Below, piece by piece: positions 73 to 47,996 of a stretch of DNA of 64,000 nt (position 1 is the first letter of the stretch; each line of letters opens with the position of its first letter). The notes under the pieces were generated by a model. The model ran no database searches, was not told where the DNA came from, and saw only the letters and a program-made list of their open reading frames with translations. The position numbers and the translations under genes were made by a program. The DNA is from Tubulanus polymorphus (taxonomy: Eukaryota; Animalia; Nemertea), in the NCBI RefSeq assembly GCF_964204645.1, contig NC_134031.1:19723910-19787909 (forward strand), read 5' to 3'.

Positions 73-2529
73 GTGAGTTTTTTAAGAGAAAATTCAAAGT
101 TGAAAGAGAGAAGTCAGAGGAATAAGTAACCCCCAACCTAGACATGGCGGTCACTGACTCAGGGAATCAGAAAAATCTAGAGAAAAAAGGAATTCAGATA
201 ATGTTAATGACCGTGTGTTTCTTTATCAATTCAATAATGAAAAATGAATGACTTGTAACATTTCAAACCTAGAAATTTCTCTGATTCACTGAATTTTGTG
301 TAATCACATGGAAAACTCAGGGTATTTGTTACTGGACAGAAAGTGGCGGCACTGGATCTGGATTGTTATAGTTTTCTCTAGACTACGAACGTACATTTCA
401 TACAGTCAATATTCTAACTGATTGTAATTGTATTACAGCTGCCGTACCCTCCTGTTCAACAGCGTCCGGCGTGGACAGCACCGATCACTGTCCTCAACGA
501 TGACATCATCCGACCACCGCAACCGCTGCAACCTGTCTCGACACCGGCCAGTTTCCCGTTCCTGGCGACGGTGACGAATAGCGCGTACTCCACGCAACCT
601 CGACCTCCGAGCGTTTCGATGAGATCTCGTCCGGTCAGCGCCGGGTCTCGCGGCAGTCCGAAAATGATGTCGCCGAACCTCGCACAACGAAGTAGGTATA
701 AAACAGAAAAGTTTTCCCAGACCGAGGAGTTTAATGAATTCTCCATAGAACTAGTTGATTTCAATTCTTTTACTTCTTTAAGTGTCAAATTCTAACAAAG
801 AACTGTAAAACTGGCTCATTTTGCTAGATTGTCTTAATGCCTTTTTGTTTGTGAATTTGTAGGTGTAACTGGTGCGTGGGTTTCAGCCCCTGTTTCTAGT
901 AGTCAGCGTCCAGGAATCACTGTCATTTCTAATTCACCCAGTAATGAAATGATTCTCCTTCAAGAAAAGGTATGATAGCATTTTCTAGCTAAACTCTTCT
1001 CAGCGAAGATAATTCAAAAAACAAAATGACAAATTTCTATTTTTTTTTCTCAGGAGCAGAGGATTTTACAGCTAAATCAGGAGTTAAGTCGTTTGAACGC
1101 CGTTGAGAAAGACAGCCAACGAAAGGATCAAATTTTGGTGCAACTTCGCGACGAAGTCAACCAACTTCGTCAGTCTCAGAGTAACATGATGTCCGACCCG
1201 GATGTCACTCAGAAATTATTACAGCTTGAAAACGAAGTTTTAGCGAAGAAAGAAGAGGTGAATCAAGTTAAAGATCAGGTGAGATGCAGCACACTCTTCC
1301 TTGCTGATATATTACTGGGTTGATTTCTATGAAATCCCATCTTTAGTATAAGCTTACATTACCATATATATGACCATCACGTTACCATTTACATTTTAAT
1401 CAATCTCAGTTAAAACTTTGATTCAGTTAAATCGAATGCAGAAATTATCGTCGAATCAACCAGCGGGTACGCTGCGACACGAACTGAACGAGAAACTCGT
1501 CGAAGTGAACAGCGTACGCACGCAACTCGAGCGAACTCGTAAAGATAAAGACATCACATCGGGACTCGTCACTCAAATGCAGCGCGACATGTCGAGTAAA
1601 GATTCCACGATCAGTCGGTTGACGCGCGAAATCGAAAATCTTAAACGCGACGGCCGAGAAAAAGACGTTCAATTGTCGGCTTTAACCGCAAAAGTACGTT
1701 CAAAATAGATCGATGAAGGGTGGTTGTTATCAATCAAAAACTGTTTATACGTTGCTTAACTTCTTAGTCAATTTACGATTGTATTTTATGTTCAAAATCT
1801 AACATGTTGGCCACTTACCGGTACCTGGAAAATCAGAGGTTTCAGATGAAAATCTAGCCCTAACTTGGATCCCGCTTTATGAAAAAGTCTACAAACCTTT
1901 TTTTGGTTTTCTTAATCCAGTTCGCTAGATTGAAAGAGAACAAACTAGCCCTCGACGAAATGGAAGCCAAAGATAAAGAGTTGACGAATCTACGACAGAA
2001 ATTCAAGGCCGCCGAAAATTCCGTGCAAGAACAGAAAGAGCTGGTCTCTTCGCTGAAAGAAGAGCTGGAGAAAATCAAGGAGAATACGTCAAAAGATACG
2101 ACGGTAAGTGAATGATTTAGAGACCTTGTTCTAAGTGAAATATCAGAGAGATTCAAGTCACGTGTAATTATGTTTCCCTGTTTGGAAATATTTGGGAATT
2201 TGAATGATTTTTCTCAACTCGGGAGATGTTTGGGAAATTCACATTTTACTCTTCGTGAAGCATAGTTCTGGGATTACAGTTGTAACTGCGAACCTGAAAC
2301 GGAGTCAGTTTTTAGTAGGAAAACGTACGGGTTTGCAGTAAATTATTTGATGTATATGTTTTCAAACAGAATTTAAAGAAGATGACCGCTGAATTGGACC
2401 AGGTTAAAGCTCAATTACTCGACACACAACGATCGGAAAGACAAGTTCGTATCGACAATGAACAAACATCAAAACAAGTGAGTATCCTCTCTCTCTCTCT
2501 ATCCTCTCTCTCCCTCTCCCTCCCTCTCT

Positions 2530-2619
<90 letters not shown>

Positions 2620-5600
2620 CATGTGAAATCAATCTATATAGATACAGAAGCCTCTCTTCTTACTCTTGATTTGCACTTGATTTTGGTGAAGTAATGATTT
2701 TCAGCTATTCCTCGCCCCTGAATCAGACTACCAATCCAGAATAAATATTTTTTGCGATCTGATTATCTTTTTGGTGGTAGAAATTTCTGATTACTTCCAA
2801 ATCTAAGATGGAAAATCCCACACTCAGAAAGAGTCTGAAAACTTTCGTTTAGATGACTATTAGGATACAGAAATAACGTTGAAAATAAATCATTCATTTA
2901 AGAAAATCTTTTCAGACTGTTGCGTCTTTCTGAGTGTGGAATTTTCTATGCAATTGTTACAACAACGACAGTATTTCACTAATGATTATTGGACTAGAGT
3001 TGGGGAAGATTTGATTTTGAATTTGTTTTCGGTTTTCCTCAGAAATCCTATCACCTTCTGTCTATTTCGTTTTGACACAGCAGTATACCCACCTATAATT
3101 CCCGGTGTATTGATTTTCACTATTGATTTGACCTTCACCTTTCTCCACACGTCGTCGTTTTCAGTTTGAATTGTTCCGAAAATCGATATTGCAGACGATA
3201 TTTTCGATCAAAGGCACGAAAGTTCCCAAAAAACAAATCGACGACATTGAATTAGTGTCGCTACTACGCGACACATTAAACCAACTCGCCGGTCCGAGTG
3301 GGTCAACTTCCTGCGCTAATTGCAAGCAAAAAGCGTCCCAACGAGCGAAATAATCTTCAAGATATATTCTTTAAATCAGGGTACTTATGGGTTTTGATAA
3401 ATGGGAATTCAAGACTGTGATAATTGTGATCGATTGATGAATGTGATGTCTTTGTTTAGTTTATGTTATGTAGTTAATTTATCTGTTTTTGAGTCGATAA
3501 GATACACAATACCCGTCGTGTAAGTTGAATTATGAGAGACAAAGTTCTTGAGTAAAAGGTTTATGTATTTGAGCGATGTTTAAGCTAAACACTATTAGAC
3601 ATCATCAGGTGTACTGAATCTGTATGTCTGATGATGGCTAATAGTCTTTAGCCGAAATATTCCTCAAATGTATTAACCTTTTACTCATGAACTTTACATC
3701 TTAAGCTTAATTATTGTGAGATTTTTCTTGTTTTCAATTTGAGATTATTGTTTTATTTTTTTTCTGTGTCAGTGACAATCAGGTCTCCTATTGTATTTAT
3801 TACTTCTTAATGTTACATAGTATATTATTATATATCGGTAAGGTAGATACGCAATCATATGAATGTCGAATTATGAAGGCACTTCATCAGTGCAATATCT
3901 ATAGCATATAAATTGCTTCCCCCTGAAGAGTTTATTAGTAATGGGATGCTTTGCCCCGATACGAATGGAAGAAATTCTGATTTTTAGTTTACTGTAGAGG
4001 ATACTGTGGTTCAAATCTGTGATCAAATTTTCTTATCGAAATTAATCTCAAAGTTTGCATAGCGTAGACTCTGGTATAGACTAATACGGTATAGCATTCA
4101 GAATTATTGCAGTCTGAATAATCATTCTATAGAAAGATCAGTTTGATACAGTATGAAGTACATTGTATGAGGACGAACAGATGTTTCAATACTAGATAAT
4201 AAGGTTCCGCTATCATCAGACCCTTCATCTTCAGTGACTATGATTTCAATAACCATTTACTTCTTTTTTAATCAGGGCCCAGGCCTGTGAATCTGTATAC
4301 CGGTTTATTAAACAACATCCTTTAACATTCAAGAAATATCTTTGTGACTTCGAGCAATGACTCAAGAGTCCGGCGGTTAGGTGTGTGTATATATGTATTA
4401 CCTATGAAACAGCTGTAGATAATGTGATTATGAATTTGATTAATAGTTATTACCTGCCTCTAAACCCCCTCTATTCATACCAGGTATCATTGATTTATTG
4501 TGCACATTCTCCATCAATTTCTACACTTATTTCCGCACACATTGTCTTACGCGCTCATACATTCCTGTGTGTTTAGTTTCAGTTAACAAATATTGCTTTT
4601 CAAAGACGTTTTCCGATCAATATCTTCCAAACTCAAATTCTGGCCAAATTGGTTTTACTGGTAGATCAACCAGTCATTGAATTTTGTGTAGATTTATAGC
4701 AGAAATAACTGATATTTAGTTGTCAAAAAATGTTACTTTATTACTACCAGATCCAGGGTTATTTTATTAGGACTTACTGTTCTTCATTTCGTTGATAACT
4801 GCATATGGGAGTCTTTATTGTAAATCACTTAATTACTCAACTCTAATATAATCACTTCTATCGTCCAAATTTAAATATTGTATTTTGAAGAAAAAAAGCG
4901 ATTCTTTGTTGAAAATTAGATTTTGTAGTTATATAACTGTAATAAAGGCTCCCAATGTGTTTTTCAAAATTAAACTTTTTGTCTTATTCTATTTTGTGGC
5001 GGGACATTAGAAAAGGTGGCCTCAACAAATTACCTAGTCTCACATGTCTAGATACATGTATAATACTATTTGATAAATATAAGTCTCAATGGTATCTAGC
5101 AATATAGGATTTTATAAAAAATGCCATCTTTTTGAAATAAGTCTGTTCGGGTTTCATTGCGTGGAGAGATTTCTTCAGAAGAATTATATTCATGAAATTT
5201 ATTGAAGGCAATATTCACTCAGTTCCTTTCAATGGCTCTTCTCAATAGAACATATCGTATGCAATATGCCACCAGAGGAAAATGCTCGCAGTAAGGTAAA
5301 TGAGGCTTGAAGTTAGATATACAGGTAATCATAATGACAGTATTCATTCAGTTTCTATATGATTATTCTGAACATTAATATAGCATTCAGAACATGTAGA
5401 ATCTGACAGCTGTGACATCACTACAGTACGACCCTTCAATGAATTCATTTTCAGCATTTTGATTGAAAATTATCCAACCACTTCATTCGTGTCATAACAG
5501 ATGTTCCTCACTGATATAATGTACTGATCGAATATGATATTGAATGCACTGTGGCGTAAAAAACATGTTTTTTCGTCTTCGATTCCGAACAATATATTCA

Positions 5601-8600
5601 TTATTTTCCATTAGTTTGATACTTTCCCCCCAGATGTCACTAATGACAACAGCTTTTAGAGTGGCGGCCACCCCTTTCATTTTTACATCCAGCCCTCTGA
5701 TTGAAAATCATCCACCCGCTTATGAAATATCTTCTGCCCCTAGTGGATGTCGAGATTCAATCCATGTTCATAATTGCTTTGAAATATCTTGAACTAATGT
5801 GAAAAATAGAAGATTACACCTAAATAAAGCTAAGATTTTCTGTATTTTTTGGGGGGTGAAAGCCTTGGTACTTCAGCATCAACGATATCATACACTTAAC
5901 AATGACTGCGACCCAAGCATATGGAAACTGCCACAATCTCAAAAATATTGTTAATTTCAGTCGGAAAGATTTCGAAATCGAGTGATCCAGGTGGCGTTCT
6001 CTACGCCGGGCGTGAAATACCCCGAGGACGAGATCAAAGACGACGAATTGTTGGAAACGCTGAAAAAGATGATCGACGAACGAACGGAGATGCATCGTAA
6101 AATGTTGGACATGAAAGAATCGTTGAAACAAGCGAATCACAGTAAAAAAGAACAAAATGATAAATTGAACAAACTGAAACATCATTTACACGAAGCGATG
6201 GTAAGTGAGGGTCGAATTAAAAAAACTGGATCCAGTTACAAAACCTGATCATAATCATACAGGAGTCAATATACAACCCAGGGGTCAGTTGCATAGTCAT
6301 GGCTTAGACTTAAGACCAGTCTAAGACCAACTTAGTTCTATAGCCAATCTAAAATTAAGACCAGTTTTAAGATTTAAGACTACTTTTGCACCTAAGTCAC
6401 GACTGTGCAACTGGCCCCTGAACGGTACCCTTTCAAACATTCAACATTGTAATGGGAAGATTATCGCATTTTGAAAATGTTCTGATAAAATGTCTGTTAT
6501 CTGGCATTGTTAGTTTTTTCAACCAAAAATGTCCCTGGTGAAGTCCTGAACATGCGGAGTGTGGACGATCATAATTTAAAGGATGATGATGATTTATCAC
6601 GTGTCTGAGGGGGGGGTTACGCTTGTATTAATTCTGACCCCCTTCAAAAAATCCAAGTGATGTCTAGTAACCTGCATAGATTCCAATTGCTGAAAGTGAA
6701 AGTTTAGTCATAATTTTGGCAAATGAAAATTTTAACTTTTTTGTGAAAGGGAGACATTGTACTCTAGATACTAACAGCACTCTTCATTCTTTACAGAAAC
6801 GTTATCGTGAACACGGTCGTCTTTCGGAACAACTGAGGAAGGAGGTCAGCCTCCTTCAATCTCTGGCAACCGAGGAAAACGTGAGCCACGTGAAAAACGC
6901 AGTCGTTGATATTTTACAACACGAACTAACCTGGCAGCAGAATATCGAGGATGCTTTACAAAAATGTGGAGTCAATACAAAACTTTCTAATGATGGTAAA
7001 AAAAAATATTATTCGAAAATCTTGAAATAGAATTAAAAGTCTAGATTTGACAAAAATGTGGATAACGTCAATACAAAACTTTCTAATGATGGTTAAAAAA
7101 AATGATATTTGAAAAATCTTGAAATAGAATTAAAATTCTAGATTTGGCTTATATTTCATTATTCAATTTCAGAACCGGCCAAACACATATTGACTCTGTA
7201 CAATACGTGGGAATCGGGAATTTCGGATACAACGAAATTAAAGAATCGTCTGGACGAGTTACAGAATATACACCAACAAGATTTAGACGCTCAAGCCGAA
7301 CGGTTTAAACAAGAGATGAACGATAAAATCAAAGATGCCATCGAAAAAACTAAACTCGAAGGTGCAGCGTTTTCATATATTCAAATCCCCAAAAAAAACT
7401 ATAAATTAGTTCGTAGATAATGGGGAAGTGCAGCACCAGCTCTTTCCCACCAGATGGCGTGATGAACACTCAATCTAGTGTATGACACGTGTTGTTCATA
7501 ACTTAACTATATTTTGAGAAAAGTTTATGTTTTCTGTTGTTTTTTGATATTGTACCATGTTAGTCTCCCTCCATATACGATGGAAATGGTTGGAGTGTAA
7601 ATAAATTCCTAATTCCTTGTCAGATTCAGTTCATTATCAATCAACTTGGAACTAAATCTTTAAGGTTCCCGAGTTCATACATTATTTCACGAACCACCAA
7701 TACTTTTACAATGATTGTTATAGTTTTCATGAGAGAAAAGTTCATTCGTGACGTGTTTTTGGTTATGTTTATTTTCTTATCAGACGAAGAGAAATTGAAC
7801 CAAGCCATCGACGAAATCCGTCAATTGGAAACGGAAAAACGTGAAAACGCGCTGGAAACGGAATTGAAGAAAATCACCGAACTGGAAGAGAGTTTGGAAC
7901 AACTTCGCAGTTCTATAGCTAATAATGAATCGACGAAAGATGACAATAAACAACAAGCTATTGATGCGTTGGAGCAACTGAGCCATCTGAAAAAATCAGA
8001 GGTATGAAAATTTTTATTAGTAAGGTTTCCAAACTGGATTAGATACCACATACCTTTTATTCATCTCTATTTCTTTCTCGGAAGGACTGTGGAACTAGAT
8101 CCAGATGAAAAAGAGTCAGGGAATAATAGTTGGAAATTTTGTAATAAAGCTAAAGATCGGGGAAATTTGCTAGATGACGCGTAAAATCAATGCTTGACAT
8201 ATTTGACTGTGTGGTTGAATTCTCAGCAGATCAGTCAGGGAAAACAACGTGCAAGTCAAATAAAAGTGGCCACCCTGATTATAATCTAATTTTTATTTTA
8301 CCGCGACTGCGAGCAATTAGTTCTTGTCACCAGAACGAGTTTTGTCACCCAATAAATCTTTAATCGCTTTTCACCGTCGATTAGAGTCGTTACCATGACT
8401 TCAAATGATTCGAGTTAATTCAAACAAATAATCGACTTCTTTGATGTCAGTAAGGACCATCGAGCTCCGTGTGTTTATAGAAACAGTAGCCGGATAGTAC
8501 TTTAGATTGTCATCTTTATGTTCTCTCGCGGTTGCTATGGGTAAACAATTCGATATTATTATCTATGGTAGGAATATGAGGTAGCTAGAGTAGACTTTGC

Positions 8601-11600
8601 TAGCCTCGGATCTTGCAGGATCAATTTCGTTTGAGGCAAGAAGATTCTGGGGCAGTGAACGATGAGTTGACATCATACGAATACGAGTATATTAATGAAT
8701 TTTGATCTTTGATCTTTAGGGAGAGTTTGAAACATTTTTGATTTTTGATTTTTGATGAATAAAATTTCGCTTTTAACCCTTTAGATTTTGTATATACTGG
8801 TAGCAGGTTTTAAACTTATTATCTATTCTCCACGTCAGAGTTTACAAGCTATTCTACCATATCATTTTTAAGATTTTGTCCGGGGTATGCTATAATAACC
8901 TGAGGCAAGTACAGTCTACACTGTACGATACAACTTCAACTTATTCAAATTATCAACTTCTATGTTGTGATGGTATCGCAGGTGTCCTTGATAAGAATCT
9001 ACGGCCATTTGCTCAAAAGTTGGCTGGAGTTGGCCAGTGGATAGTTAAGACATTGTGACAATTAAAAGTTCATTGTTACTATGGTATCTATCTGCTGGTT
9101 ATCAACTTTTGAGCAACTTGCTCCTGATCTATTAAAGAAAACGTCTTATATTTTGCTTCTTCGATTCTAGGAAGAGCTGAAAGAGGAATTGAGCAATCTT
9201 AAAGTCGAACACGCCCAACAGGTGGAGGCACTGTCACTCGATAAAACGACGCTCGAGAAGAAATTTGAGAATGATTTATCGAGTTATAAAGAACAGATTA
9301 AACAACATTCAGTGACGATCTGCGCGATGGAAGAACGATTGAATAAAGTGATGAAAAAGAACAAAGATCATCAACAGGAAATCACGCAACTTAAACAGAA
9401 AAATAGTGGTAAGATCAATTAGAGAGATTAACCTAAATAATCATTCCCTTTCAGTCCCAGCTTTATTGAACAATGCCATACGATGATGAAAAAATCAGGG
9501 GCTGGTTTCTCAAAAGTCTAGAGTTAACTGGTGGACAAATACCATGGTTATGATCCAACTTGATTCGTCACTGCTATACTATTAATCGACTGGGGCCAGT
9601 TGCATAGTCATGGCTTACATTTAAGACCAGTTTAAGTCCAACTTAGTTCTGTTGCCAATCTAACAACTTAAGACCAAGCTGAAGATTTAAGACCATTTTT
9701 GGTCATGACTGTGCAACTGGCCCCTGGTTAACTCTTACAAACTTTTGAGCGACTGACCACTGTTCTTTTGAAAAAAGTCCCCTACACGCTACATGAAATA
9801 TTTTCTAGAAGTTACACAAACATTTTTTGGATCAATTGATCCGCCATGATGACTTCTGGTTTTATAGGCTCCTAACTTCAACCCAGGGTCCGATTTCACA
9901 GTCATGGCTTAGATTTAAGACCTGTCTATGACCAACTTAGTCCTGTAGTCAATCTAACAACATAAGTCTGATGATTTAACAGGAACCAAAACTATATTGT
10001 TCTTCCCTAGAAAATAAGACTAAAACCCATTACATGTATATGAAACTTTTAGAAGATTGAAATGAAATTTATTCATCAAGAATTTTAAGCAAATGTTTGT
10101 ATGCGCTGTTTTTATCTTTTAATCATTTCTCCCACGCCTGAGCGCATAAACGCAATTCTAACATTCTTCTCTAGAAGTTTTTACGTTCATTAAGTTTATT
10201 CATGATATTCATTGAAATGATGATTGCCCATTTCCAATTCGATTTATCACGACTACAATAATCATCTTTCTACGCGTATTTGCGTAAACTCGCTACGAGC
10301 ATTGCGTCGTCGCATCAACGGTAACCATAGTGACAGTGACAACAAATAAAATAATTTTCGTCACAATATTACTGGGTTAGTCGGGCGTAATTAAAAAAGA
10401 TATATATAATCAGTTTGAGCTGAGGGGTGTCAATTGATAGAGAATTAATACGGTTCAATGAACGTAATTTTATTGAACTGATTAGATATTTTTTGACGGC
10501 TCGAATGAGTTTTCTCGTCACCAGAGTTTTGTGAGGTTAATATTCCGATTGCGTTTGACGGAAATGACAGGTTGTTCTGATTTAGATGTCGGGAAGTTTC
10601 TTTTTTGACGGTTGGGAAGCTTTTTCAGTGAAATAGACGCGTATTTTATTGCTGTGCGGTAGAAACCAGTTCCACAGTTGTCATTTGATTGCAGTGTTAC
10701 TGGTAATTACAAGGGGTCATTGATTTATTACGTACGCATTAGGGGAGGGGGGAGGGGTCAGTGCAATTGCGTACTGTAATGCTTAATGTATATGAAAAAA
10801 TGGCCGATTATGCGTACAGAGGGGGAGGGGGGGTTGAAAAATTCAAATTTTATGCGTACGTAATAAATGAATGATCCCCAATAAACCTTACTCAGTACCT
10901 GTCAACTCAGTAAACGGCTCAAGTTCAGGAATTTCATTTGAAATAGTTACAGTTCCAAAACAACCAGTTGGAAAGAGGCAGAGTTTCACTGTAATTAAAG
11001 TCTACAGTCAAATCAATCGAAGAACTGTGGATAAACGAGGCATGATTTGATCAGGATCATGCTTCACAATAATAACTAATACGTGGTGCAAATCGGTTGA
11101 GCTTTTTGCTCTAGTTACACGCGATCTGGAAAACTGAACCTTCGATCGTTTGTTATGATCCGAGTTGAATCGGTTGTCAACGTCGATTAAAAACGCGAGA
11201 TCGAGAGAGCACGCGCGCACGGTGGCGGCGCGGAAATAGAACATAACGCTGTGTCAGTGCATGATCGCACAATTCACTGCGAGATTATGTTAGAAAAATA
11301 CGCGTTGAAAACTGGTTTTTAGCTCTTTGTGACTGCGTGGTGAAATTCCCCTCGGGGAAGCAAAAATCAGCCACCAATAAGTTATTCTCTCGACAAACAT
11401 TACATATGTATTTTTCTAACCGGAGGTTGTATAGAGTATTGTATACGACTCCCCGGGATATTACTGTCACCTGTACCTCACATTTCAAACTTTCCACGTA
11501 ATTAACCTATTTTTTGATTCGGGTAACGGAATGTGTGAACACGAAATTCTGTGTAGATATTTGGAAGAAAGGAACAGGGTTTATTTGATATTTCTCAATC

Positions 11601-14600
11601 TGGAACTGCCCTTACCTGCAATAGAGGAAATGAGAAATATACTTTATTTCAAACAAAAACTCTTAAAAATCCTTCTTGCTAATCGGTGTTTAATGTCACT
11701 CATCAAAATCTGCTCATTCCTTTGGTATATTATTGTGCGCAGTCAAATGAAAACTCCACCTTTTGCAGCCCTGCATATATTCCACTGTGATAAATTCTGT
11801 GTAGTTCAAACATTTTTCCCACATAATTTCAACATGAAAATTATGACCAGTATAAAAGAACGTAAAGAACAAAGAACATAAAGAAAGTAAATACATGATA
11901 GTTTTTATAGCTCTGTTTTATATGCGAGTTTGATTAGAACGAGGAATCGGTACCTAATCATAAAACAAATTAACATTTTTGTACCTTACTATAATTGAAA
12001 AGACCTAAAAATGAAATTCGGCCAATTAGGATTTCAGTGTGGAAGTAATGATACTTATTGCTGCATTGGTTCACCGAGACCTGTTCTCATTCATTGCGTG
12101 TGCTTTTATTCGAAGCGAAACGACGAAAATGGATCTCTATTCAGAAACCGAATTTCGAATATGAGACCCTAAACGTAATATTTGAATAACACCTGTTGAT
12201 TGGATTAGACCCTGTGTCTTCAATAATAAATCATTCTATATTTATATATGTATAAAGTACACGTTTGTTGTAGAGTATTTTGTCTGGCCTAGTTTTGCTG
12301 TATTCATCGTCGTCGATAGGTTTTTGTTCGGGGAATTGAATCGAATGCGAGATCGGAAGTTTTTTCATGATTTGACGACAGCGCGGCACTCGCTACCCGT
12401 GAACGCTGTTGTGTCACCGGTTTGTTGACGACCGTGGATCAGCGTTCATTCTGTCACCAACACTCACAGAACGAGTCATACTCTGCGACCGTCGATAAAT
12501 CTTCATTGCTCTGTTGTTCTGATGCTCATCGTAGTTGTTTGAAAGTGATAAATCACGGGAAATGTTGTTTCAACTCGACTGCTGATTATCGAGGGGTCTT
12601 TGTCGGAGTTTATTGACTTTGGATCTCGCGCGTTCACAAGATTTCAAACGTCTTCGTCGGGATTAAATCTTTTCGAAAGAATAATGGAGTTTTAATTCGC
12701 GCGGAATAGCGCCCGGAATGATAATTGATGGTTAGATTTTCGGATCATTCAAATTGAAGAAAATTATCCGTCGAAATGATGAAAATGGAATTCACCGAGT
12801 TTTTGACGTTACCGAGTGTGAAATTGAAACATTTAAAGCCGAACTCGAAGGGTCCTCCGCCGTTGTTTGTGTCCAGCTCCGCGGCATCGGTTTCTACATC
12901 AGAGGCGACGACAAAATCAGAAAATCTCGAGACCAAATCGGAGAATTTCGATTCAGAATGGCAGCAACAACCGAACGAAGTCGCCGTCGATAGTGATGAT
13001 AGGGAATTGAGTGTGAATAGTTTCGGCAGGAATTGGTTGGCAAAATCGGAAAATTTCGCGCAGCAGAATTCTGGGGAAATCACTGGATTTAGGTTGACCG
13101 GTTACGAGCATCCTAATCGAACAATTCGACCGATGAGAGTTCATCATTATCGAGAACAGTTTAACATCGATGACAATCAAACGACTGAACAATCAACAAA
13201 CCCCCCTCCACCTTCTCCTGTCACGCAGAACGGCAATGGTTTGATATCTGAGAATTTTGAACTCGGTGCCGTTCTCGTCAGCCGTTTAACATACGAGGAA
13301 CCCCAACCCATAGAACCGCAAGGTAAAATCGGCTCAAATATTCATATCATATTCTTCAAAAGTTCATATCCTCGTCATCCGTCACAAATTCTGACCATCT
13401 TTACTTTGCTCATTGACACAAAATTGTTCTCAAATTTGCAATTAAATAAACATTTGCTACTTAATTTGTTCAAATGGTCCAGAGAATTGAAGCTGAACCT
13501 ATTTGTGAAACTAACTTGAAGATGGATAGATTCACATTAGTCTAGTATCTTCCCTAATGCTGTAGGGGACCGTAACTACGTCTGGTATTCAGACATGTTG
13601 AGGTATAGTTGATAAATGTGTCAGTGTTTTGTGTCATCGTGCTGCCCTCGTTTCATTCAGTAATTGAGAAATTTATTTCTGTTGATTGGAAAATGTCACA
13701 ATGAACCGGTCGGGCGACTGCTTGTTACGATGATGCGTTTTAAGGTTACCATGACAGCTCTTTCTACAACGGCTCAGTTTTGTTACTGTTACTGCGTGGA
13801 CACACTTCTAGAATTATCTAAATTGTCTCTTACAAAAAATACCTAAGATATATTACGTATTTTTTCTATGAAAGCTCTATGTATTTTTGTCATGAAGCTA
13901 ATGAAGCTATGATTATGAGGACCAGGGAGATGGCTCGCCCATTATATTCACATACTGGTTAACATTAAACATCCTTGTACAGTAGAACCTACATTTGAGG
14001 TCGGGATTAAAAGTCATTTTCTCACATACTAATGAAGAAATGAACTGCAGATATTGTCCCAGTTTAGAGAAAATTCCGGATTAAGCCGATGGGGATTAAG
14101 AGAGTTTGACTGTAGTAATTTTACCAGATTGTATAGACGTGTTGCCTTAAGATATCTGTGAAACTATAGTGAATACAAATGAATATTTAAAGATCTAACC
14201 TGTTGGGTGGTCAGTCATTCATTCATTGCATCTACAGTCAATATTCAGTAATCTTCATTTACTTTGTGAATTATTCATTACAAGGATGATTCGATATGTC
14301 TCCTTATTGACTTAGTAATAGATGTTACATGATGCATTGTCAATTACTAATGTATTAAGAGTTAATTTCACAAGTTTCTCTGACATGTTGTATGCGTACC
14401 CGGTATATATCACTTGTGTATATTCGTCCTACTAGCGGTGAACAATGATTGATATGCATTTTATAGTTTAATTAAGTTTCCCTAGATCACATTCCCTTTC
14501 ATTGTGAACCTGCAGATCGTTTTGCAAACTAACGGAATATATTTGTTTTCCGGGTTTCGTATTTGCGAATAGACGGAACGCAGTATAAAGATTTGTAATT

Positions 14601-17600
14601 CGAAATTTAATTAGAATATCTTTCATTCGTTATTTTATAGAGCTGAAGAACAAACCATCGCCGAAACAAAAAGAACCACCGAAAGAACCACCCCCAAAAC
14701 CGCAAGTTATCGTCGCTCAACCGCCACAAGATATCCTAGCGATGGAACAGCTTATAGTCGTTTTACGGTGAGTTGGAATTGAAATTTTCAAAAAAATTTT
14801 ATTAAGTTTTAATAGCATTTTCACGAACATTATCAACGTACATTGCCTTTCATCTTTTGCTTAAGCTGACAACTTAATTGAGTTTGACATTTTCCCATGA
14901 ACACATTTTTAATTGTACTAAAGCATAAAAACCTCTTTACTTCGGTCAACAAACACTTATTTCATGGTCTTACAAAGACCTTAATATCTACTTCAATAAG
15001 TCTAATCCTCACTAAGGAGATAATAGCTGTTTTGTGGTGGAATATAATACAAGGCCACTTTCAATAAACATATTTCAGGATTTTATTTTCTTTGAACTGA
15101 GCGTCAATGTGTGTCACAAACAGTTCTGAAATTGAAACTGTCAATTTTGAATGAATGATATTTGCGTCTATTTTACTGGCTGTAAATAAGAATTTTCAAT
15201 TCTTACGTCAGTCTCAAACCAAAAACTAATGAATTTCCTGTTCATACTTTGTTTAGTCGCGAGAATGTGGATTTGAAGAAGCAATTTAAAGAACAACAGG
15301 CTGTGATATTGGGATTACGGAAAGATTTGACGGGTGCCTCGGCAAGACTCACAGACATGACAGGTAAAATGTGTACCGTAGATAATCACTGAAATATTAG
15401 GGTTAGGATATTAAAAACCAGTTGTGAATTCAAGGCTCAAATTTAAGCCTGTCTTGCAGTTGATCTACAGGGGCCAGTTGCACAGTTGTGACCTAAGTTC
15501 AAAAGTGGTCTTAAATCTTAAGACTGGTCTTAAGTTGTTAGATTGGCTATAGAACTAAGTTGGTCTTAGACTGGTCTTAAGTCTAAGCCATGACTATGCA
15601 ACCGGGCCTAGCTGATCGAATAACATACACTGAATTTGAGATTTAAGACCATTATTTGACTGAGGTCACGACTCTGCTACAAAGGTCCATCTTTTAAACC
15701 TGTATTCAGACGATGAATAGCATTTGATTTATTTTGAAGGTGAACTGAGTGAAGCCCAGAAACAAGAACTTGAAAAGAACAAAGTTACAATTCGTCAACA
15801 GCAAAAGGATCTGGTTGAACTACGACAACAGTTGGCTAAAGTTTCTCAAATAGTTGATAACATCACCGGTGAAGTGAAGGCCAAAGAGGCTGAAATTAGG
15901 TAGGAAACACATAATTAATTGGTGAAGTCAACCGGGGGTTTCTTTTCTATTTTTCATTTCTTGTCAAAATTTACGATTTCCAGCAAATATAAAGCGATAT
16001 TGACGAAGTTTAAAAATTCGGAGAACGAAAAAGAAGACTTGATCAAAAACCTGGAAACGAAGCTGACGTCAACGGAAGACGAGAAGAATAAACAGTTGGC
16101 CGTTTTAGAGAAAGAAGGACGAATAACGTCGGAAATGACGGCGATGGGAGCTCAATGTCGCGGTGAACGTCACGAGCAGGTTATATCCAGACAACGCGAC
16201 GCTTTAGTAGAATTACGATCGCGTATTAAACAACTAGAACAATCTAGACCTCTGCGTAAGTTGAAAATATTGTCGTATATTGTGTATTCTGAAAATTGAA
16301 AATAATAGACCCAGTTCCACTGTTCAGGTATTTGACTCTAGGGGAAATGAACTGAATGGAATCAATTATTTTATGTGGTTGATTTTGATTGAGAATTGTG
16401 GAACTGGTTCCTGAACCCTGGGTCTGGTCATTTTACAGTCATTGTTTATGATGATAGAAGAATACTATGATAGCTGTTATACTGGTATCTCTAGAATTAT
16501 TCATTTCTATTGATTTATTTCCCATTATTTAGCGGACATACAAATGATGCAAAGAGAAATTTCGAATTTACAATTAAATCAGTTAAATTTCGGAACCACA
16601 TTGGCAGGCTTCAATAACGACAGCCGAATTTGTACAGGCAGGAAATGTTAGAAGATTTCAGCATGTGATGATATTAGATTAATCATTTTGTTTGCGAACA
16701 CAGCTTGAAAAATCCGATTTATAGCGTGGCATTAATTTATGATGATGATGATGTATGTAATCTACGAAGCACACATTTATTCGAAGCATGATTTAGATTC
16801 TGCTATATTCTTTATTTATGCATGATCATATTTTATTACCACTACAAATTACTGCATATATTATTCCCGGTATTCAGTGATTGTTATTTGATGTTATATG
16901 TTTTCAGTTCCGAACCACGACCAGGCGCTACAACAAGTGATATTATTAAAGAAAGAACTGGCGGAACATCGCGCTCAACAGGCTTTAGCCGAGGCTACCG
17001 GACATTCTGCATTAGATAACGCTATAAATGGAGCGCGCGGTAAGATGACTCCGCAGGCCGCGTCGGCTGAAGTAGAGGTAGAGAAGAGCGCTCATAGAGA
17101 AACATTAGACACGCTGGAAGAAAGTGAAAAGTCTGTGAGTATCATCGACAATCTGGGATTTCTGCCTATTCAAATATGTCGATTTTTGCTTTGATCAGAA
17201 GTGAATTTTCTATTTAGCAATTTCATCAGTGACCTCAGTTACAGGTTGATGTATCTTATACTTTACAAAAAGCTATAAGATTTGAAAGCATTTTCATATT
17301 TTCTACATCGTGTCAAATAGTACTTATTAGGTAAACTAGATTATTTGAGGCATGATCTTTCGCTGCTAGTGTATAGTACCTTTATCAGTTGACTCATTCA
17401 TCTAATGAAGCTGCTATTGACTAGTAGCGAAACCTCGTGCCTCATGTAATCTAGTTAACCTATAGAGTTCTATTTGTGTCGTACTTATTCCACACCAGGT
17501 TATCACGCGACTCATCTATGAATCTTCTCATATTTTCTAGTACATGGTGCTATTGCGAGCGATGGCGAGTTGTCTGGAACTCGAGGAAATCTACGGCCTA

Positions 17601-19254
17601 CGATCAATGGCTCACATACCGCGAGATGAACGAGACAAACTCTCCGAGGAACGGGAAAAATGTTGCGAAATGTTAGCCAACCGAATCAAAGCTCTTAAAG
17701 ATCGACTTTCACGAAAGGAAGACCTATTACAAGGCTACGAAACTGACTTAGCAAAACTAAGGTATGACCTCACGTCTAACTTTTGGAAGCTTAATAAAGA
17801 TCTTACCAGAAATTTCATTTGCTTGTTTTTGTCGATGATGGTTCATTATTTACCTTTTCTATTTCACAGACAAGCAGAAGAATTGGCCAATAGAAAACAT
17901 GTTCAAGTAGAGAGCTTAGCTGTAAGTTATCAGGCCTTAAAATATATCCCTAAACCTTTCATATCATTCTCAATGCCGTTATTATTATTGCCATTTTGGC
18001 ACCCAATTCAGCATTAGACACTGCACTAAAGCTCTTACAACAATGCTATTGATTATTAAATCAGATTTTGTCGATTAAAACACTGGGACCCAGTTCCACA
18101 GTTGTGAATTAAGATTTGACTCAAGAGTTAACTCATTGGGAATGAACTAATTTTCACTCAGAGTTAACACTAACTCACGTCTGTGGAACCGGACCCAGTA
18201 TATTAAATTCAGAATTTAACTCGATAATGTCTGTGTAAAAGGATAAATCTTCTGGGTAGTTGAAAAACGTTCAAAATGGCCAAATCATTGCCACGTATGA
18301 TAGTTACAAATTGTTGTTTTTGCAGACTGATGTTCGTAGTCGAACGGAGGAAGCTCAATATCTTCGCGAGTCGTTACATCGCACGAGAGATCAACTAGAA
18401 CAAGAGAAACGATTAAACAGTGCAATTAAACAACGTAAAGGTTTACAATTAGCCGATACTATCGACACAAACAGATCGAAACAATATCCTAAACATCAGT
18501 GTCCTGTCGAAGACATACACGCCAAGGTAATTCTTAATTTATCAATAATAATAATAATAATGAAATGTTTCTTATATAGGGCTAAATCCAGCCAGGCTGC
18601 TCAGAGCGCTTTACATTTTTGGGTATCATTACCCCGGCCAATTTTAAACTCTAACATGTATCAGTCATCTCTCCCTGGGGAGAAGTAACACCGAGCTGCT
18701 AACAAACGCTCAGGAGTCATCTATCAGGCCAGGTACCTATTTACTCCTGGGTGGAGAGAGGCAATGAGGATAAGTGTCTTGCCCGAGGACACTACGGCAA
18801 TGTAAGGGTTCGAACCCACGACCTGGCTTCCCAGAGCCACAACCGCTCGGCCACAACCGCTCCCACTAGATCAATAGATTCATATTGATACCTATGCATA
18901 TTTTGTAACCATAATTGCAAAGTTGTAGCTCATGACATGTTCTATAATCCTTGATAGTTCATAACGTTTTAAACATTCCGTTTCAGGCCTCTGCGCGAAA
19001 GAAAGCGGCGAAAGAGAAACTAAAACGCAAAGACTACGAAATCAAAACTCTTAAAAGCGAATTAACGGAGAAAGAACGAGATTTATGTAAAACGACTTCG
19101 CGTTTAGTGAATCTAGAAACAACGATGGTACGTCGGAAAAAATCATCGCTCGATCGATGTACGACGCCCTGAGACGAATTCGAGATAATAATTTGATTTC
19201 TTTTTCAAAATTATGAAATTTCAGGGAATGAATCCTGACAACGAATTTGCATGA
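55..19254 (+). CDS. FHAD1: Forkhead-associated domain-containing protein 1 (FHAD1)-like coiled-coil protein, 5'-partial. Exons: 55-72, 439-691, 863-969, 1054-1278, 1427-1693, 1921-2103, 2370-2477, 5961-6200, 6797-6995, 7173-7361, 7784-8001, 9171-9408, 14641-14767, 15257-15363, 15740-15899, 15984-16255, 16908-17134, 17541-17761, 17870-17921, 18326-18526, 18987-19127, 19225-19254
   Basis: 22 exons with GT-AG boundaries and mutually compatible phases join into a 3783-nt open frame (1260 aa + TGA). The protein is a long heptad coiled coil. It has motifs I recognise from FHAD1 orthologues: [25 protein letters not shown] and [31 protein letters not shown]. The N-terminal FHA domain is not in the window. 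Confidence 0.85.
439..691 (+). CDS. FHAD1: FHAD1 exon (Pro/Ser-rich linker [12 protein letters not shown]...)
   Basis: tattacag| acceptor, a|gtaggt phase-1 donor. Confidence 0.8.
863..969 (+). CDS. FHAD1: FHAD1 exon
   Basis: ttgtag| acceptor, aag|gtatga donor; phases 1/0. Confidence 0.8.
1054..1278 (+). CDS. FHAD1: FHAD1 exon ([14 protein letters not shown]...)
   Basis: ttctcag| and cag|gtgaga; coiled coil. Confidence 0.88.
1427..1693 (+). CDS. FHAD1: FHAD1 exon
   Basis: attcag| and aaa|gtacgt; coiled coil. Confidence 0.88.
1921..2103 (+). CDS. FHAD1: FHAD1 exon
   Basis: aatccag| and acg|gtaagt. Confidence 0.88.
2370..2477 (+). CDS. FHAD1: FHAD1 exon
   Basis: aaacag| and caa|gtgagt, phase 0/0. 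Confidence 0.88.
2487..2614. repeat. (CT)n microsatellite
   Basis: Direct reading; begins 10 nt after a donor site. Confidence 0.97.
2811..2946. mobile_element. Short MITE-like inverted-repeat element
   Basis: gaaaatcccacactcagaaaga...gtctgaaaa at the left end mirrors ttttcagac...tctttctgagtgtggaattttc at the right. Confidence 0.55.
3165..3353 (+). CDS. FHAD1: FHAD1 alternative terminal exon ([14 protein letters not shown]...QRAK*), paralogue of exon 5961-6200
   Basis: Pyrimidine-rich ttttcag| phase-0 acceptor; 14/34 ungapped aa identity to the start of exon 5961; ends in TAA. Confidence 0.7.
   Translation, partial: FELFRKSILQTIFSIKGTKVPKKQIDDIELVSLLRDTLNQLAGPSGSTSCANCKQKASQRAK
3541..3695. 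repeat. Long hairpin (arms about 73 nt) made of two inverted Penelope-type hammerhead-like units
   Basis: Arms are reverse complements; the right arm reads CTGATGA-tGGCTA-atagtctt-TAGCC-GAAA-tattc. Confidence 0.7.
4941..4946 (+). terminator. Candidate polyadenylation signal for the short FHAD1 isoform
   Basis: AATAAA followed by a GT/T-rich tract (tgtgtttttc), about 1.6 kb after the stop at 3353. Confidence 0.4.
5961..6200 (+). CDS. FHAD1: FHAD1 exon ([14 protein letters not shown]...)
   Basis: atttcag| and atg|gtaagt. Confidence 0.88.
6282..6417 (+). mobile_element. MITE family A (PIF/Harbinger-like)
   Basis: TIR GGGTCAGTTGCATAGTC / GACTGTGCAACTGGCCC, internal ttaagacc repeats, CWG flanks; other copies at 9593 and 15471. 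Confidence 0.8.
6797..6995 (+). CDS. FHAD1: FHAD1 exon
   Basis: ctttacag| and g|gtaaaa (phase 1). Confidence 0.85.
6959..7148 (+). repeat. Tandem duplication of about 92-98 bp spanning an exon end and donor site
   Basis: caaaaatgtgga...gtcaatacaaaactttctaatgatgg...cttgaaatagaattaaaa..ctagattt occurs at 6959 and 7051. Confidence 0.9.
7173..7361 (+). CDS. FHAD1: FHAD1 exon
   Basis: atttcag| and g|gtgcag; phase 1/1. Confidence 0.82.
7784..8001 (+). CDS. FHAD1: FHAD1 exon
   Basis: cttatcag| and gag|gtatga. Confidence 0.88.
9003..9123. mobile_element. MITE family B
   Basis: TIR ggccatttgctcaaaagttg / caacttttgagcaacttgctc. Confidence 0.65.
9171..9408 (+). CDS. FHAD1: FHAD1 exon (...[19 protein letters not shown]...)
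   Basis: attctag| and g|gtaaga (phase 1). Confidence 0.88.
9499..9759. mobile_element. MITE family B copy interrupted by a family A MITE
   Basis: TIR gggctggtttctcaaaagt / acttttgagcgactgacc flanking the 9593-9723 insertion. Confidence 0.65.
9593..9723 (+). mobile_element. MITE family A with exact CTG target-site duplication
   Basis: CTG|GGGCCAGTTGCATAGTCATG...CATGACTGTGCAACTGGCCC|CTG. Confidence 0.85.
10713..10879. mobile_element. MITE with 27-bp TIRs and internal G-tracts (Harbinger-like)
   Basis: GGGGTCATTGATTTATTACGTACGCAT / ATGCGTACGTAATAAATGAATGATCCCC. Confidence 0.8.
12776..13322 (+). CDS. FHAD1: Putative alternative first coding exon of an internal FHAD1 isoform (182 codons, Ser/Pro/Glu-rich)
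   Basis: Part of the longest ORF in the window; in-frame TGA at 12755 upstream of the ATG; phase-1 donor caag|gtaaaa compatible with the phase-1 acceptor at 14641. Confidence 0.6.
13980..14112. mobile_element. Tc1/pogo-type MITE
   Basis: TA|CAGTAGAACCT...GAGTTTGACTG|TA. Confidence 0.6.
14641..14767 (+). CDS. FHAD1: FHAD1 exon ([22 protein letters not shown]...)
   Basis: ttttatag| and cg|gtgagt; phases 1/2. Confidence 0.85.
15257..15363 (+). CDS. FHAD1: FHAD1 exon ([17 protein letters not shown])
   Basis: gtttag| and cag|gtaaaa; conserved FHAD1 motif. Confidence 0.9.
15471..15608 (-). mobile_element. MITE family A, opposite orientation
   Basis: Near reverse complement of 6282-6417. Confidence 0.82.
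15740..15899 (+). CDS. FHAD1: FHAD1 exon ([13 protein letters not shown]...)
   Basis: ttttgaag| and ag|gtagga. Confidence 0.88.
15984..16255 (+). CDS. FHAD1: FHAD1 exon ([20 protein letters not shown])
   Basis: tttccag| and c|gtaagt; conserved FHAD1 motif. Confidence 0.9.
16308..16410. mobile_element. MITE family C, degenerate copy
   Basis: ccagttccac...gtggaactgg termini shared with 18086-18195. Confidence 0.55.
16908..17134 (+). CDS. FHAD1: FHAD1 exon
   Basis: ttttcag| and tct|gtgagt. Confidence 0.88.
17541..17761 (+). CDS. FHAD1: FHAD1 exon
   Basis: ttttctag| and ag|gtatga. Confidence 0.88.
17870..17921 (+). CDS. FHAD1: FHAD1 exon
   Basis: tttcacag| and gct|gtaagt. Confidence 0.85.
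18086..18195. mobile_element. MITE family C
   Basis: TIR ggacccagttccacag / ctgtggaaccggacc with CWG flanks; related ends at about 10665, 56821 and 61300. Confidence 0.7.
18326..18526 (+). CDS. FHAD1: FHAD1 exon
   Basis: ttttgcag| and aag|gtaatt. Confidence 0.88.
18544..18864 (-). mobile_element. tRNA-derived CORE-type SINE with L2-like tail
   Basis: The minus strand reads A box TGGCCGAGCGG, B box GGTTCGAACCC, CORE-like GTGTCCTCGGGCAAGACACTTATCCTC...CCACCCAGGAGTAAATAGGTAC, then tail TGTAAAGCGCTCTGAG...(ATT)n. Confidence 0.8.
18987..19127 (+). CDS. FHAD1: FHAD1 exon
   Basis: gtttcag| and atg|gtacgt. Confidence 0.85.
19225..19254 (+). CDS. FHAD1: FHAD1 last coding exon (GMNPDNEFA*)
   Basis: atttcag| phase-0 acceptor and TGA, followed by an AT-rich UTR-like stretch with AATAAA at 19897 and 20371. 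Confidence 0.75.
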   Translation, partial: GMNPDNEFA

Positions 19255-20370
19255 TCTGTCTGTCTGTTGCACACTTGACTATATGGTAATCACTGTGATA
19301 AACTGAAGGGCACCACCACACCAAACCAGGAAGAGAAGGAAAAATCAGGCCACACTCACTCACATATGCACAGCACTACCGGTACATGCAGTTCATGAAG
19401 ATTCCATGTCATCTTTTCTAATAATGGTAAAATGGATGTTTTAAGTGGCACTGATTGATTATTGTTGTTGCATTGCATGGAGCAGCAAATGTTACCAATT
19501 TCAAATCATTGGTGGATAGATTGAAGTATATTTGAAATCTCTCGTGGCCTTCATTAGTTCTTATCTTAGAATGTTCTTCCTCTAGACTTCCTCGTATAGA
19601 ATATGAATCTCATTTCTGCGTTCAAGCTGCCTCAAAAAACTGCAACTAAGAGTTATGCTACTTTAGCGCATGCATCATTAAGTGATTACTTAATGTCAAA
19701 TTTTAAAACGTTGATATTGATAAAAGGTTTGCCAAAAAATACAGGGTAAACGCTTATTTATTGGACCTATATTTTGCACATCCCAAAAAGATGGATTTGA
19801 TGTATAGGCAAATGAGAGCCTGTGTAGTAATTTATATTGTACTAGTTCGCGTAGTGTTAGATAAATGCATAAAATTTTGCACCTTCAATCATTCCGAATA
19901 AAGATAATCATACTCATAATTCTTATCCAACATTCCATCCAGCTGTCAGTTTAACGGCCAGGTTTAGAATGAAAGACTGTTCTAAGTTCGTTTTGAACCG
20001 ATAACCATTTCTGTATCTTTCAATTTGAGTCGTTAACTGGACTCAGTATTCGAAAAAAAATAAATCGAAGAATCTTATCATTGTTTTTGTAAATGGAAAA
20101 TTATATATTTTTACCGAATCATGTGATAAATATTTTAGCGCATGCAAAAGCATTTTCGAACGGATTTTATTGTTATATACATTGTGTAACGATTCAATTT
20201 GATCAATTTAAAAGTAATTTATCTTGAAGTAAACTTTAATTGATATAATTTAATTGCTTAGTTCTTAATAGTGTAATGGTATGTTATTAAACTATGATAT
20301 TTGTATTGGTTATTGTCAGTGATCATATCCGATATTTGAATTATTACTATTGATATTTTTTAAACTGACA

Positions 20371-20376
20371 AATAAA
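20371..20376 (+). terminator. Candidate distal polyadenylation signal of FHAD1
   Basis: AATAAA at the end of an AT-rich 3' UTR-like stretch, followed by T-rich sequence. Confidence 0.45.

Positions 20377-22045: not shown

Positions 22046-47996
<25,951 letters not shown>

Follow-up and report, generated by a model that had tools for sequence, protein, structure and literature searches.

The question raised by this locus is whether a short open segment within an intron of the Tubulanus polymorphus FHAD1 gene, which resembles the exon that follows it and ends in a stop codon, is an alternative last exon or something else, such as the relic of a duplicated exon. An earlier note had proposed the former, i.e., a built-in switch to a truncated isoform. 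We addressed this by computational analysis of a 64-kb stretch of genomic DNA (the window; coordinates are positions within it), referring to the intronic segment as exon A and to the following constitutive exon as exon B. The predicted short isoform was searched one exon at a time.

Exons A and B Lie within an FHAD1 Orthologue

The host gene of both exons is the T. polymorphus orthologue of FHAD1, an invertebrate gene of cilia and sperm tails whose product is among the cilia-associated proteins listed in PMC13096173. The identification of the gene in the earlier note was borne out by two results. First, an exon encoding an FHA domain lies about 90-300 nt 5' of the window start (L005, 9698-9910), with a Pfam FHA E value of 2.2e-11 and a score of 44 bits (cut-off 20.7). 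Second, tblastn gave 15 ordered HSPs with each of the FHAD1 proteins of Ptychodera (1398 aa) and Plakobranchus (1364 aa), together spanning window positions -586 to ~19160, and the long coiled-coil body is collinear, exon by exon, with FHAD1 of hemichordates, molluscs and annelids.

The constitutive exon upstream of exon A (2370-2477, forward strand) is translated as 36 codons up to a phase-0 end. Over its final 16 residues it aligns with the sequence before the PF28447 ("Ccdc27") motif in Ptychodera FHAD1 and in a short mRNA, P0090, and it is 50% identical to the exon that precedes the counterpart of exon B in a metagenomic relative (L006). Its donor, GTGAGT at 2478, is common to both splice choices, i.e., the acceptors of exon A (3165) and exon B (5961). 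Exon B itself (5961-6200, forward strand) has 80 codons, runs from phase 0 to phase 0, and has the donor GTAAGT. It carries the PF28447 motif of full-length FHAD1 (94.5 bits with the family HMM), and precomputed labels place this family on the orthologous exon of relatives. Orthologues of exon B are found as single-exon ORFs in many invertebrates, and a word search of protein collections with exon B yielded one relative, with 53% identity.

Exon A Is a Diverged Duplicate of Exon B

The coding part of exon A (3165-3353, forward strand) comprises 62 codons followed by TAA (3351-3353). The first 40 codons copy the first 40 of exon B and are followed by a 22-codon tail with a CxxC and a basic end. 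Its start is 2.8 kb from that of exon B, the two copies being adjacent, on one strand and in one gene. Translation of both exons reproduced exactly the peptides quoted in the earlier note, and its observation as a whole was confirmed: the 14 ungapped identities it had counted over 34 residues were recovered, the span aligned by BLASTP giving 14/39 (36%; 33 bits, pairwise E 1e-8), and both exons do have phase-0 acceptors. It had also stated that protein similarity was kept despite strong divergence of the DNA, and we found that 58 of 120 nucleotides are identical between the exons.

When all six frames of the window were searched by tblastn, exons A and B matched each other with E values of 1.1e-5 and 2.3e-5; for exon A, the best of the remaining (chance) matches scored 19.6 bits. 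Across the whole 268-Mb genome each exon was the sole non-self match of the other, giving two copies of the motif. An HMM built from 79 family members, with exon A left out of the build, scored exon A at 39.4 bits (E 1.3e-10). A Pfam scan of exon A gave no match, the models scanned being a set without PF28447.

The two exons also share their register within the family. In both, the second residue falls on the E with which the family's E-R-F-R start begins, and exon A begins F-E at the exact place where many members have F-E-R-F-R. Exon A retains the invariant P21 and the near-invariant R5, Q10 and D27, while it has lost some others that typify the family (P in S-T-P-G and the D-E-R helix); its similarity to exon B stops after codon 40. 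The charge reversal emphasized in the earlier note (KVPKKQ in exon A versus KYPEDE in exon B) is present, but it is not special to exon A because this segment varies across the family, with a PKKE version in octopus FHAD1 and PNKQ or PDKQ in other species. Judged from these alignments, exons A and B are true duplicates that share their splice register. No larger block was duplicated, since copies of the neighbouring exons are absent from the intron, and origin from a repeat or transposon was ruled out, exon A being unique in the genome.

The duplication had been described as old. Synonymous sites are indeed near saturation (dS ~1.5-2.4); however, four other FHAD1 loci were scanned, from Plakobranchus (46 kb), Octopus (79 kb), Lamellibrachia (40 kb) and the metagenomic relative L006 (6.8 kb), and none had a second copy of the motif, so the duplication may be restricted to the T. 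polymorphus lineage. A word search with exon A, with candidates of 34-108 aa, gave no match in collections that hold neither T. polymorphus nor near relatives, and it is thus silent on conservation.

Splice and Polyadenylation Signals around Exon A

Upstream of exon A (3130-3164, forward strand) we read from the sequence a candidate branch point (TTGAC), a pyrimidine-rich tract and the acceptor TTTTCAG. There is no AG between the candidate branch point and the acceptor, and the tract is richer in pyrimidines than that before exon B. Before the stop, the only GT dinucleotides in phase 0 are at 3222 (AAA/GTTCCC) and 3255 (TTA/GTGTCG); both are poor donors, and their use would shorten the motif. 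A phase-0 GT of fair context (AGG/GTACTT, at 3381) occurs 28 nt past the stop and would define a 216-nt exon, 3165-3380.

The CxxC tail, the stop and the AATAAA at 4941 are all as the earlier note described them. The AATAAA (4941-4946) belongs to a poly(A) signal cluster (4941-4974, forward strand) that also contains a CA at 4965-4966 and an ATTAAA at 4969-4974, with T/GT-rich sequence after both hexamers; a weaker ATTAAA lies at 4307. The first canonical hexamer is thus ~950 nt, and the best ~1590 nt, past the stop, making for a long 3' UTR. This putative UTR of the predicted short isoform (3354-4975, forward strand) has an intron-like composition. Apart from a palindromic repeat at 3541-3695, it is unique in the genome. 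Exon A therefore has what an alternative last exon should show in sequence, i.e., an in-frame stop and a poly(A) signal before the next constitutive exon, and from these signals it can only act as a terminal exon.

Coding-Type Conservation Argues against a Relic

The most serious rival explanation is that exon A is the relic of a duplicate, whether or not it ever was in use: a pseudo-exon absent from mature mRNA today that has not yet gained a disabling mutation. We consider this rather unlikely, although several results are in its favour. As well as the lack of a counterpart in the four other FHAD1 loci, the branch leading to exon A in a tree of the motif is very long (1.9 changes per column), several motif residues have been lost from it, and unannotated duplicated exons are common, many being weakly expressed or not expressed (PMC9013439). 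Pairwise dN/dS between exons A and B is ~0.4-0.5 which, taken alone, is the value expected for one neutral and one constrained lineage.

Other results are not those of neutral decay. Over the 40 aligned codons, exons A and B are identical at 18, 26 and 14 first, second and third positions, respectively, i.e., the second position is conserved and the third is near random. In simulations of neutral decay, with exon A neutral and exon B constrained, the joint probability of this outcome was ≤0.002 at any divergence, without counting indels; as exon A was picked for looking intact, these P values are conditional on that ascertainment. The alignment has no gaps over the 40 codons, and the frame of exon A stays open for 62.

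Composition and codon usage gave a similar picture. Exon A has a GC content of 43% and a CpG observed/expected ratio of 1.93, as against 30-35% and 0.65-0.75 in the flanking intron. The exon-like composition takes in the tail that has no homologue in exon B, has sharp borders against the intron, and ends at the stop, not at 3380. The log-likelihood ratio for codon usage was +17.1 in frame and -8.8 and -16.4 in the other two frames, and was -16.5 or lower in all 822 intronic windows. At the observed divergence, a relic in a CpG-poor intron of 30-35% GC should have lost both its coding composition and its codon usage. The acceptor, the pyrimidine tract and the AG-free zone are also intact and no lesion is visible, although exon A could have died recently after long use. 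The signals within this genome (composition, codon usage, the codon-position pattern and the neutral-decay test) thus favour the proposal that exon A is kept under selection, while the pairwise dN/dS would also fit one unconstrained lineage. Overall, exon A lacks the appearance of a long-dead relic, and several independent signals suggest that it has been kept as coding sequence.

Exon A as a Probable Alternative Last Exon

Cassette exons bearing a stop codon are a known regulatory device, and exon A might be such a poison exon (3165-3380), spliced via the donor at 3381 and causing nonsense-mediated decay, thereby tuning the level of FHAD1 mRNA. The phase, context and position of that donor would allow this. 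However, a poison exon needs only a stop, leaving unexplained why 40 codons in the register of the family are conserved at the protein level, why codon usage is favourable in one frame only, and why the composition changes at the stop rather than at 3380; we regard this explanation as improbable. Mutually exclusive use as internal exons is usual for tandem duplicates of the same phase (PMC9741552, PMC9013439), and for exons A and B it would mean two full-length FHAD1 variants. This reading has next to no likelihood and is already contradicted by the sequence: such a pair should have donors and frame-keeping lengths in both copies, while in exon A the frame is closed by a stop after 62 codons, no credible phase-0 donor lies ahead of that stop, and similarity to exon B ends with codon 40. 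Exon A contains no methionine and cannot be an ORF of its own, so an independent small ORF was also ruled out.

The best reading, and probably the correct one, is that exon A is an alternative last exon of FHAD1, because it lacks a methionine and any usable donor ahead of its stop, and is followed by a good poly(A) cluster. According to this model, exon A would have arisen as a tandem duplicate of the internal exon encoding the PF28447 motif, would have lost (or never had) a donor, and would have been kept as an alternative last exon. From the donor at 2478, the spliceosome would join the acceptor at 3165, adding 62 codons up to the TAA, and the transcript would be cleaved at the poly(A) cluster (~4941-4995). 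The product, of ~500-560 aa, would consist of the FHA domain and the first coiled-coil segments, followed by the diverged motif copy and a short, basic tail. If the acceptor at 3165 were skipped, the poly(A) site would be removed with the intron and splicing to 5961 would give full-length FHAD1 (~1350-1400 aa). The choice between the forms would thus be a competition of splicing versus polyadenylation, as in other genes with alternative last exons.

The interpretation in the earlier note stands insofar as the FHAD1 orthology, the in-register duplication, the stop and poly(A) signals that permit only a terminal exon, and the coding-type conservation and composition are observed; from these we infer the remainder, i.e., the splicing of exon A into RNA, the ratio of the isoforms and the role of the short form. 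By analogy with CCDC27 and with short forms of FHAD1 in other animals, the predicted short form is expected to be a protein of the cilium or sperm tail with a phosphopeptide-binding head and the motif, but without the long C-terminal coil.

Comparison with Known Systems

As in other tandem exon duplications, a single exon has been copied within a gene without change of strand or phase, the encoded peptides have stayed similar while the DNA has diverged, and one copy is possible per mRNA (PMC9013439, PMC9741552, PMC8373072). By contrast, exons A and B are not interchangeable: given the stop in exon A and its lack of a donor, the two splice choices would yield a truncated and a full-length protein, respectively. 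Such a switch in protein length, in place of an exchange of homologous segments, is one of the less common outcomes of tandem exon duplication. The present case also differs from Drosophila pip, where the duplicated units were already terminal exons; here the copy of an internal exon became terminal. In calcitonin/CGRP and in the secreted and membrane forms of immunoglobulin mu, alternative last exons couple splicing to polyadenylation. These resemble the present case in that an intron of the longer transcript harbours an upstream terminal exon, complete with stop and poly(A) site, and in that use of the upstream acceptor excludes all downstream exons. Here, however, the putative terminal exon and the constitutive exon after it are paralogues, so that both isoforms would carry a version of the same motif.

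Short FHAD1-like Proteins in Other Animals

Proteins with the layout predicted for the exon A isoform occur elsewhere. Vertebrate CCDC27 and amphioxus P0112/P0113 are collinear with the N-terminal part of FHAD1 (residues 183-535 in the case of CCDC27) and end ~25-45 aa past the PF28447 motif with a Lys/Arg-rich tail (~25-30 aa past it in CCDC27). P0090, from a metatranscriptome, is a 544-aa protein with an FHA domain, coil, motif and basic tail, encoded by an intronless contig of 2021 nt that ends 15 nt past an AATAAA. The FHA domain is kept in P0113 and P0090, while none was seen in vertebrate CCDC27. The predicted T. polymorphus product extends 22 residues past the aligned motif and includes 4 K/R among its final 10 residues, and CCDC27, P0090 and P0113 likewise end with a short basic tail soon after the motif.

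CCDC27 and the amphioxus short gene are separate genes and not isoforms, P0113 being a tandem truncated copy adjoining the true FHAD1, and their motif exon is internal and split differently. In T. polymorphus, by contrast, both motif copies lie within one FHAD1 gene. With no other copy in the genome, exon A would be the only route to such a short form in this animal. The motif tree does not group exon A with CCDC27, and their likeness therefore most probably reflects parallel origin and not orthology. Orthology of exon A with the terminal region of CCDC27 was thus not supported, although the long branch makes any placement unsafe; the ORFs grouping nearest to exon A were P0067, P0014, P0070 and P0039 (Ptychodera), some on contigs of 880-1610 nt. 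Our literature search found no paper mentioning both FHAD1 and CCDC27, although a Pfam family already implies that CCDC27 is homologous to the N-terminal half of FHAD1.

Should exon A be used, a single gene here would yield both full-length FHAD1 and a CCDC27-like short form, the poorly understood vertebrate CCDC27 could be read as a "frozen isoform" of FHAD1, and the PF28447 motif would mark where a functional module, made up of the FHA head, first coils and motif, naturally ends. More tentatively, and with the balance somewhat against it, a short FHAD1 stopping just past the motif may be a recurrently needed product of cilia or sperm tails that different lineages supply by different genetic routes. 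These would be an exon duplicate used as an alternative last exon here, a tandem truncated gene in amphioxus, CCDC27 with further loss of the FHA domain in vertebrates, and a short mRNA in at least one other animal. If so, exon A would be the isoform-level equivalent of a vertebrate gene, one function being provided by either isoform or paralogue.

Repeats in the Intron

Two further repeats lie in the intron. An interspersed repeat of ~265 bp (5646-5914), which is SINE- or MITE-like and has 40 or more copies (76-82%), ends 46 nt before the acceptor of exon B. A long CT microsatellite (2484-2617) starts 7 nt past the shared donor and might provide a binding platform for pyrimidine-tract proteins.

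A Diverged Copy of One FHAD1 Exon

The window spans positions 19,723,910-19,787,909 of contig 7 in a 268-Mb eukaryotic genome of 77 contigs. One long gene occupies its + strand up to about position 19,160, having started some 590 nt before the window. An FHA domain is encoded by the opening coding exons (9698-9910 in L005, a stretch that includes the region just upstream of the window; Pfam E = 2.2e-11), and the remainder of the gene encodes coiled coil. It matches FHAD1 of Ptychodera (1398 aa), Plakobranchus (1364 aa) and Lamellibrachia collinearly, one exon after another. Molluscs and annelids supply the closest proteins by identity (best exons 59-65%), which makes the animal a probable lophotrochozoan. 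FHAD1 is a protein of the sperm flagellum and cilia, and its loss in mice reduces sperm motility (PMC10984166, PMC13096173). Exon 2370-2477 ends in phase 0 and is followed by GTGAGT; exon B (5961-6200; 80 codons) then carries the protein on exactly as in the orthologues, and the residues flanking this junction agree with Ptychodera FHAD1. A 253-codon open frame at 12758-13516, on the gene's strand, had no Pfam match and no counterpart between exons 9273-9401 and 15249-15374 in the FHAD1 genes of other phyla.

Within the intron before exon B lies exon A (3165-3353), which has a TTTTCAG acceptor and the same splice phase as exon B. Translation and direct reading recovered every feature that the earlier note had described (both peptides, the phase, the CxxC tail and the stop). 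Fourteen of the first 34 residues are identical between the two exons (14/39 over the BLAST span), with no gaps, after which exon A departs from exon B in a 22-residue tail, basic at its end and containing the CxxC, that leads to the stop codon. BLASTP of exon A against exon B gave 33 bits (pairwise E = 1e-8). The match had an E value of about 1e-5 in a search of the whole window translated in six frames, the best background match to exon A scoring 19.6 bits. In searches of the whole genome each exon matched only the other, and a profile search found two copies of the encoded motif, namely exons A and B. Exon A also scored 39.4 bits (E = 1.3e-10) with a family HMM that was trained on 79 homologous motifs from other species and did not include exon A itself. 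The similarity is beyond chance. No duplicates of neighbouring exons were found in the intron; a single exon was copied.

Alternative last exons that give truncated proteins are familiar. Tandem exon duplication is also common, the copies usually being mutually exclusive internal exons, and duplicated terminal exons are known, for example in Drosophila pip (PMC9013439, PMC9741552, PMC8373072). Exon A differs from these known tandem duplications in that the copy of an internal exon is proposed to serve as a terminal one. From its sequence, it would combine two known things, tandem exon duplication and an alternative last exon; the added interest lies in its parallel with CCDC27 and an amphioxus tandem gene, described below.

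Exon A Shows Signs of Coding Constraint

Identity between exons A and B at codon positions 1, 2 and 3 was 18, 26 and 14 of 40, respectively, and silent sites were near-saturated (dS 1.5-2.4). Judged from the sequences, this codon-position pattern is one of protein-level constraint. We also simulated neutral decay, the null being that A drifts neutrally from a B-like ancestor as B stays constrained. The joint event (an open frame, with third-position identity no higher and a BLOSUM score no lower than those observed) had P ≤ 0.002 at any divergence, this and the other P values for constraint being conditional on exon A having been picked for its intact look. The simulation leaves indels uncounted; across its 40 codons the actual alignment is free of them.

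Composition and codon usage point the same way. Exon A has a GC content of 43% and a CpG observed/expected ratio of 1.93; the corresponding values are 38-48% and 1.4-2.2 in neighbouring coding exons, and 30-35% and 0.65-0.75 in the intron on either side. Composition shifts sharply at both borders, 3165 and the stop, and the exon-like zone takes in the tail, for which B has no equivalent. A codon-usage score trained on 724 codons from the gene's other exons versus intron trinucleotides gave +17.1 bits in frame, the remaining frames scoring -8.8 and -16.4; in all 822 intronic windows of equal length, even the best frame scored -16.5 or below. Among conserved residues, exon A retains the proline that is invariant in the family and three that are nearly so (R, Q and D), and it begins F-E, as do many family members at the same position. 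Its acceptor has a better pyrimidine tract than that of exon B and a plausible branch point, with no AG between. Homology, codon positions, simulation, composition and codon usage thus support two parts of the earlier interpretation, exon duplication and coding constraint; the third part, use as a last exon, is taken up below.

The main alternative is that exon A is a relic pseudo-exon. The pairwise dN/dS of 0.4-0.5 would, taken alone, be compatible with one neutral and one constrained lineage. Two features typical of the family, the D-E-R helix and the proline of S-T-P-G, have been lost from exon A, and its branch in the motif tree is very long (1.9). No second motif copy was found in the FHAD1 loci of Plakobranchus, Octopus, Lamellibrachia or one metagenomic relative, in the last of which the intron corresponding to that of exon A is only about 820 bp. 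A relic must, however, be given a long functional history and a death too recent for any lesion or loss of composition, and we regard this explanation as rather unlikely.

Exon A as a Probable Alternative Last Exon

Exon A contains no methionine, and could therefore be read only if spliced to upstream coding exons. Judging by the features of the locus, it probably serves as an alternative last exon. Joining exon 2370-2477 to exon A would yield a short isoform in which the FHA head and the motif are retained and the C-terminal ~800 residues of coil are missing; by analogy, it would act as a shorter adaptor or as a competitor of the long form. Beyond the stop the intron sequence occurs nowhere else in the genome, a small palindromic repeat excepted. 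It contains on the + strand a candidate poly(A) signal, ATTAAA at 4307, and a stronger candidate cluster (AATAAA at 4941, CA at 4965 and ATTAAA at 4969), which T/GT-rich sequence follows. The most likely mechanism would be competition between splicing and polyadenylation at exon A. Use of the acceptor at 3165 and the poly(A) site would give the short isoform; if they were skipped, both would be removed with the intron, giving full-length FHAD1.

A CT microsatellite of about 130 nt (2484-2617) starts 7 nt past the shared donor that follows exon 2370-2477, ahead of the acceptor of exon A. PTB-type proteins classically bind CU-rich tracts, and one might speculate that this tract recruits pyrimidine-tract-binding proteins that sway the splice choice.

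Exon A might instead be part of a poison cassette exon, 3165-3380, with a donor at 3381. This would leave the protein-level conservation and the frame-specific codon usage unexplained, and we consider it improbable. Service as a mutually exclusive internal partner of exon B is contradicted by the sequence, since there is no phase-0 donor of any quality before the stop.

Two repeats lie nearby. About 190 nt past the exon A stop, within the putative 3' UTR, is a near-perfect, MITE-like palindrome (3541-3695; 77-nt arms, 81% complementary, 1-nt spacer), and related pieces occur on contig 7 at about 4,346,240-4,346,460. The second repeat (5646-5914), interspersed, about 265 bp long and SINE- or MITE-like, stops 46 nt short of the exon B acceptor; at least 40 copies, 76-82% identical, are spread over many contigs.

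Short FHAD1-like Proteins in Other Lineages

A profile of exons A and B, searched against 1.84 billion representative proteins, gave 97 matches of three kinds; the motif carries the precomputed label Pfam PF28447 "Ccdc27". In FHAD1 proper it lies at residues 470-590 of proteins of 1350-1400 aa, and it also occurs in single-exon ORFs of many invertebrate genomes. In vertebrate CCDC27 (420-630 aa, without an FHA domain) it lies 25-30 residues before the C-terminus and is followed by a Lys/Arg-rich end. The third kind comprises short FHA-containing forms, such as P0090, a metatranscriptome protein of 544 aa, and P0112/P0113 of amphioxus (885-890 aa).

Bowfin CCDC27 is collinear with residues 183-535 of shark FHAD1 (E = 5e-32), which makes CCDC27 a truncated paralogue of the FHAD1 N-terminal half. 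No paper in the literature searched names FHAD1 and CCDC27 together; the link is implied by the Pfam family. In amphioxus, an 890-aa FHA-coil-motif gene ending after the motif (10001-30681 of the Branchiostoma lanceolatum locus) lies in tandem with true FHAD1 (33276-40681), 2.6 kb upstream of it. P0090 aligns with residues 2-564 of Ptychodera FHAD1 (E = 3e-74); its contig (2021 nt) is intronless and ends 15 nt past AATAAA, and so is a mature short mRNA. Given CCDC27, the amphioxus short gene and P0090, an FHAD1 N-terminal half stopping just past the motif is real in several lineages, and joining 2477 to 3165 would yield exactly such a protein. In the motif tree, exon A grouped with a few sequences that include the short FHA mRNAs P0090, P0079 and P0070, and not with CCDC27, a placement that is untrustworthy because it rests on 50 columns and so long a branch. 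We take the resemblance of exon A to CCDC27 to reflect parallel evolution rather than orthology.

Amphioxus and the annelid Lamellibrachia share a DJ-1/PfpI gene immediately upstream, transcribed from the other strand, so this microsynteny looks old; in humans, 1p36 holds PARK7, CCDC27 and FHAD1. The annotation of the Lamellibrachia satsuma locus splits FHAD1 in two right after the exon B homologue. The first model (10001-29790) is a 581-aa N-terminal half with a 7-residue Lys-rich tail; the second, from 33521 onward, holds the next FHAD1 exon at 37892-38092. The split could be an artefact of prediction; otherwise it hints that a natural short form ends here too. Finally, a 610-aa cephalopod FHAD1 transcript from Logan contigs (P0050) diverges from the longer P0105 shortly past the motif exon and ends with an unrelated 22-residue tail; it may represent an unspliced intermediate or else a short isoform produced by another route.
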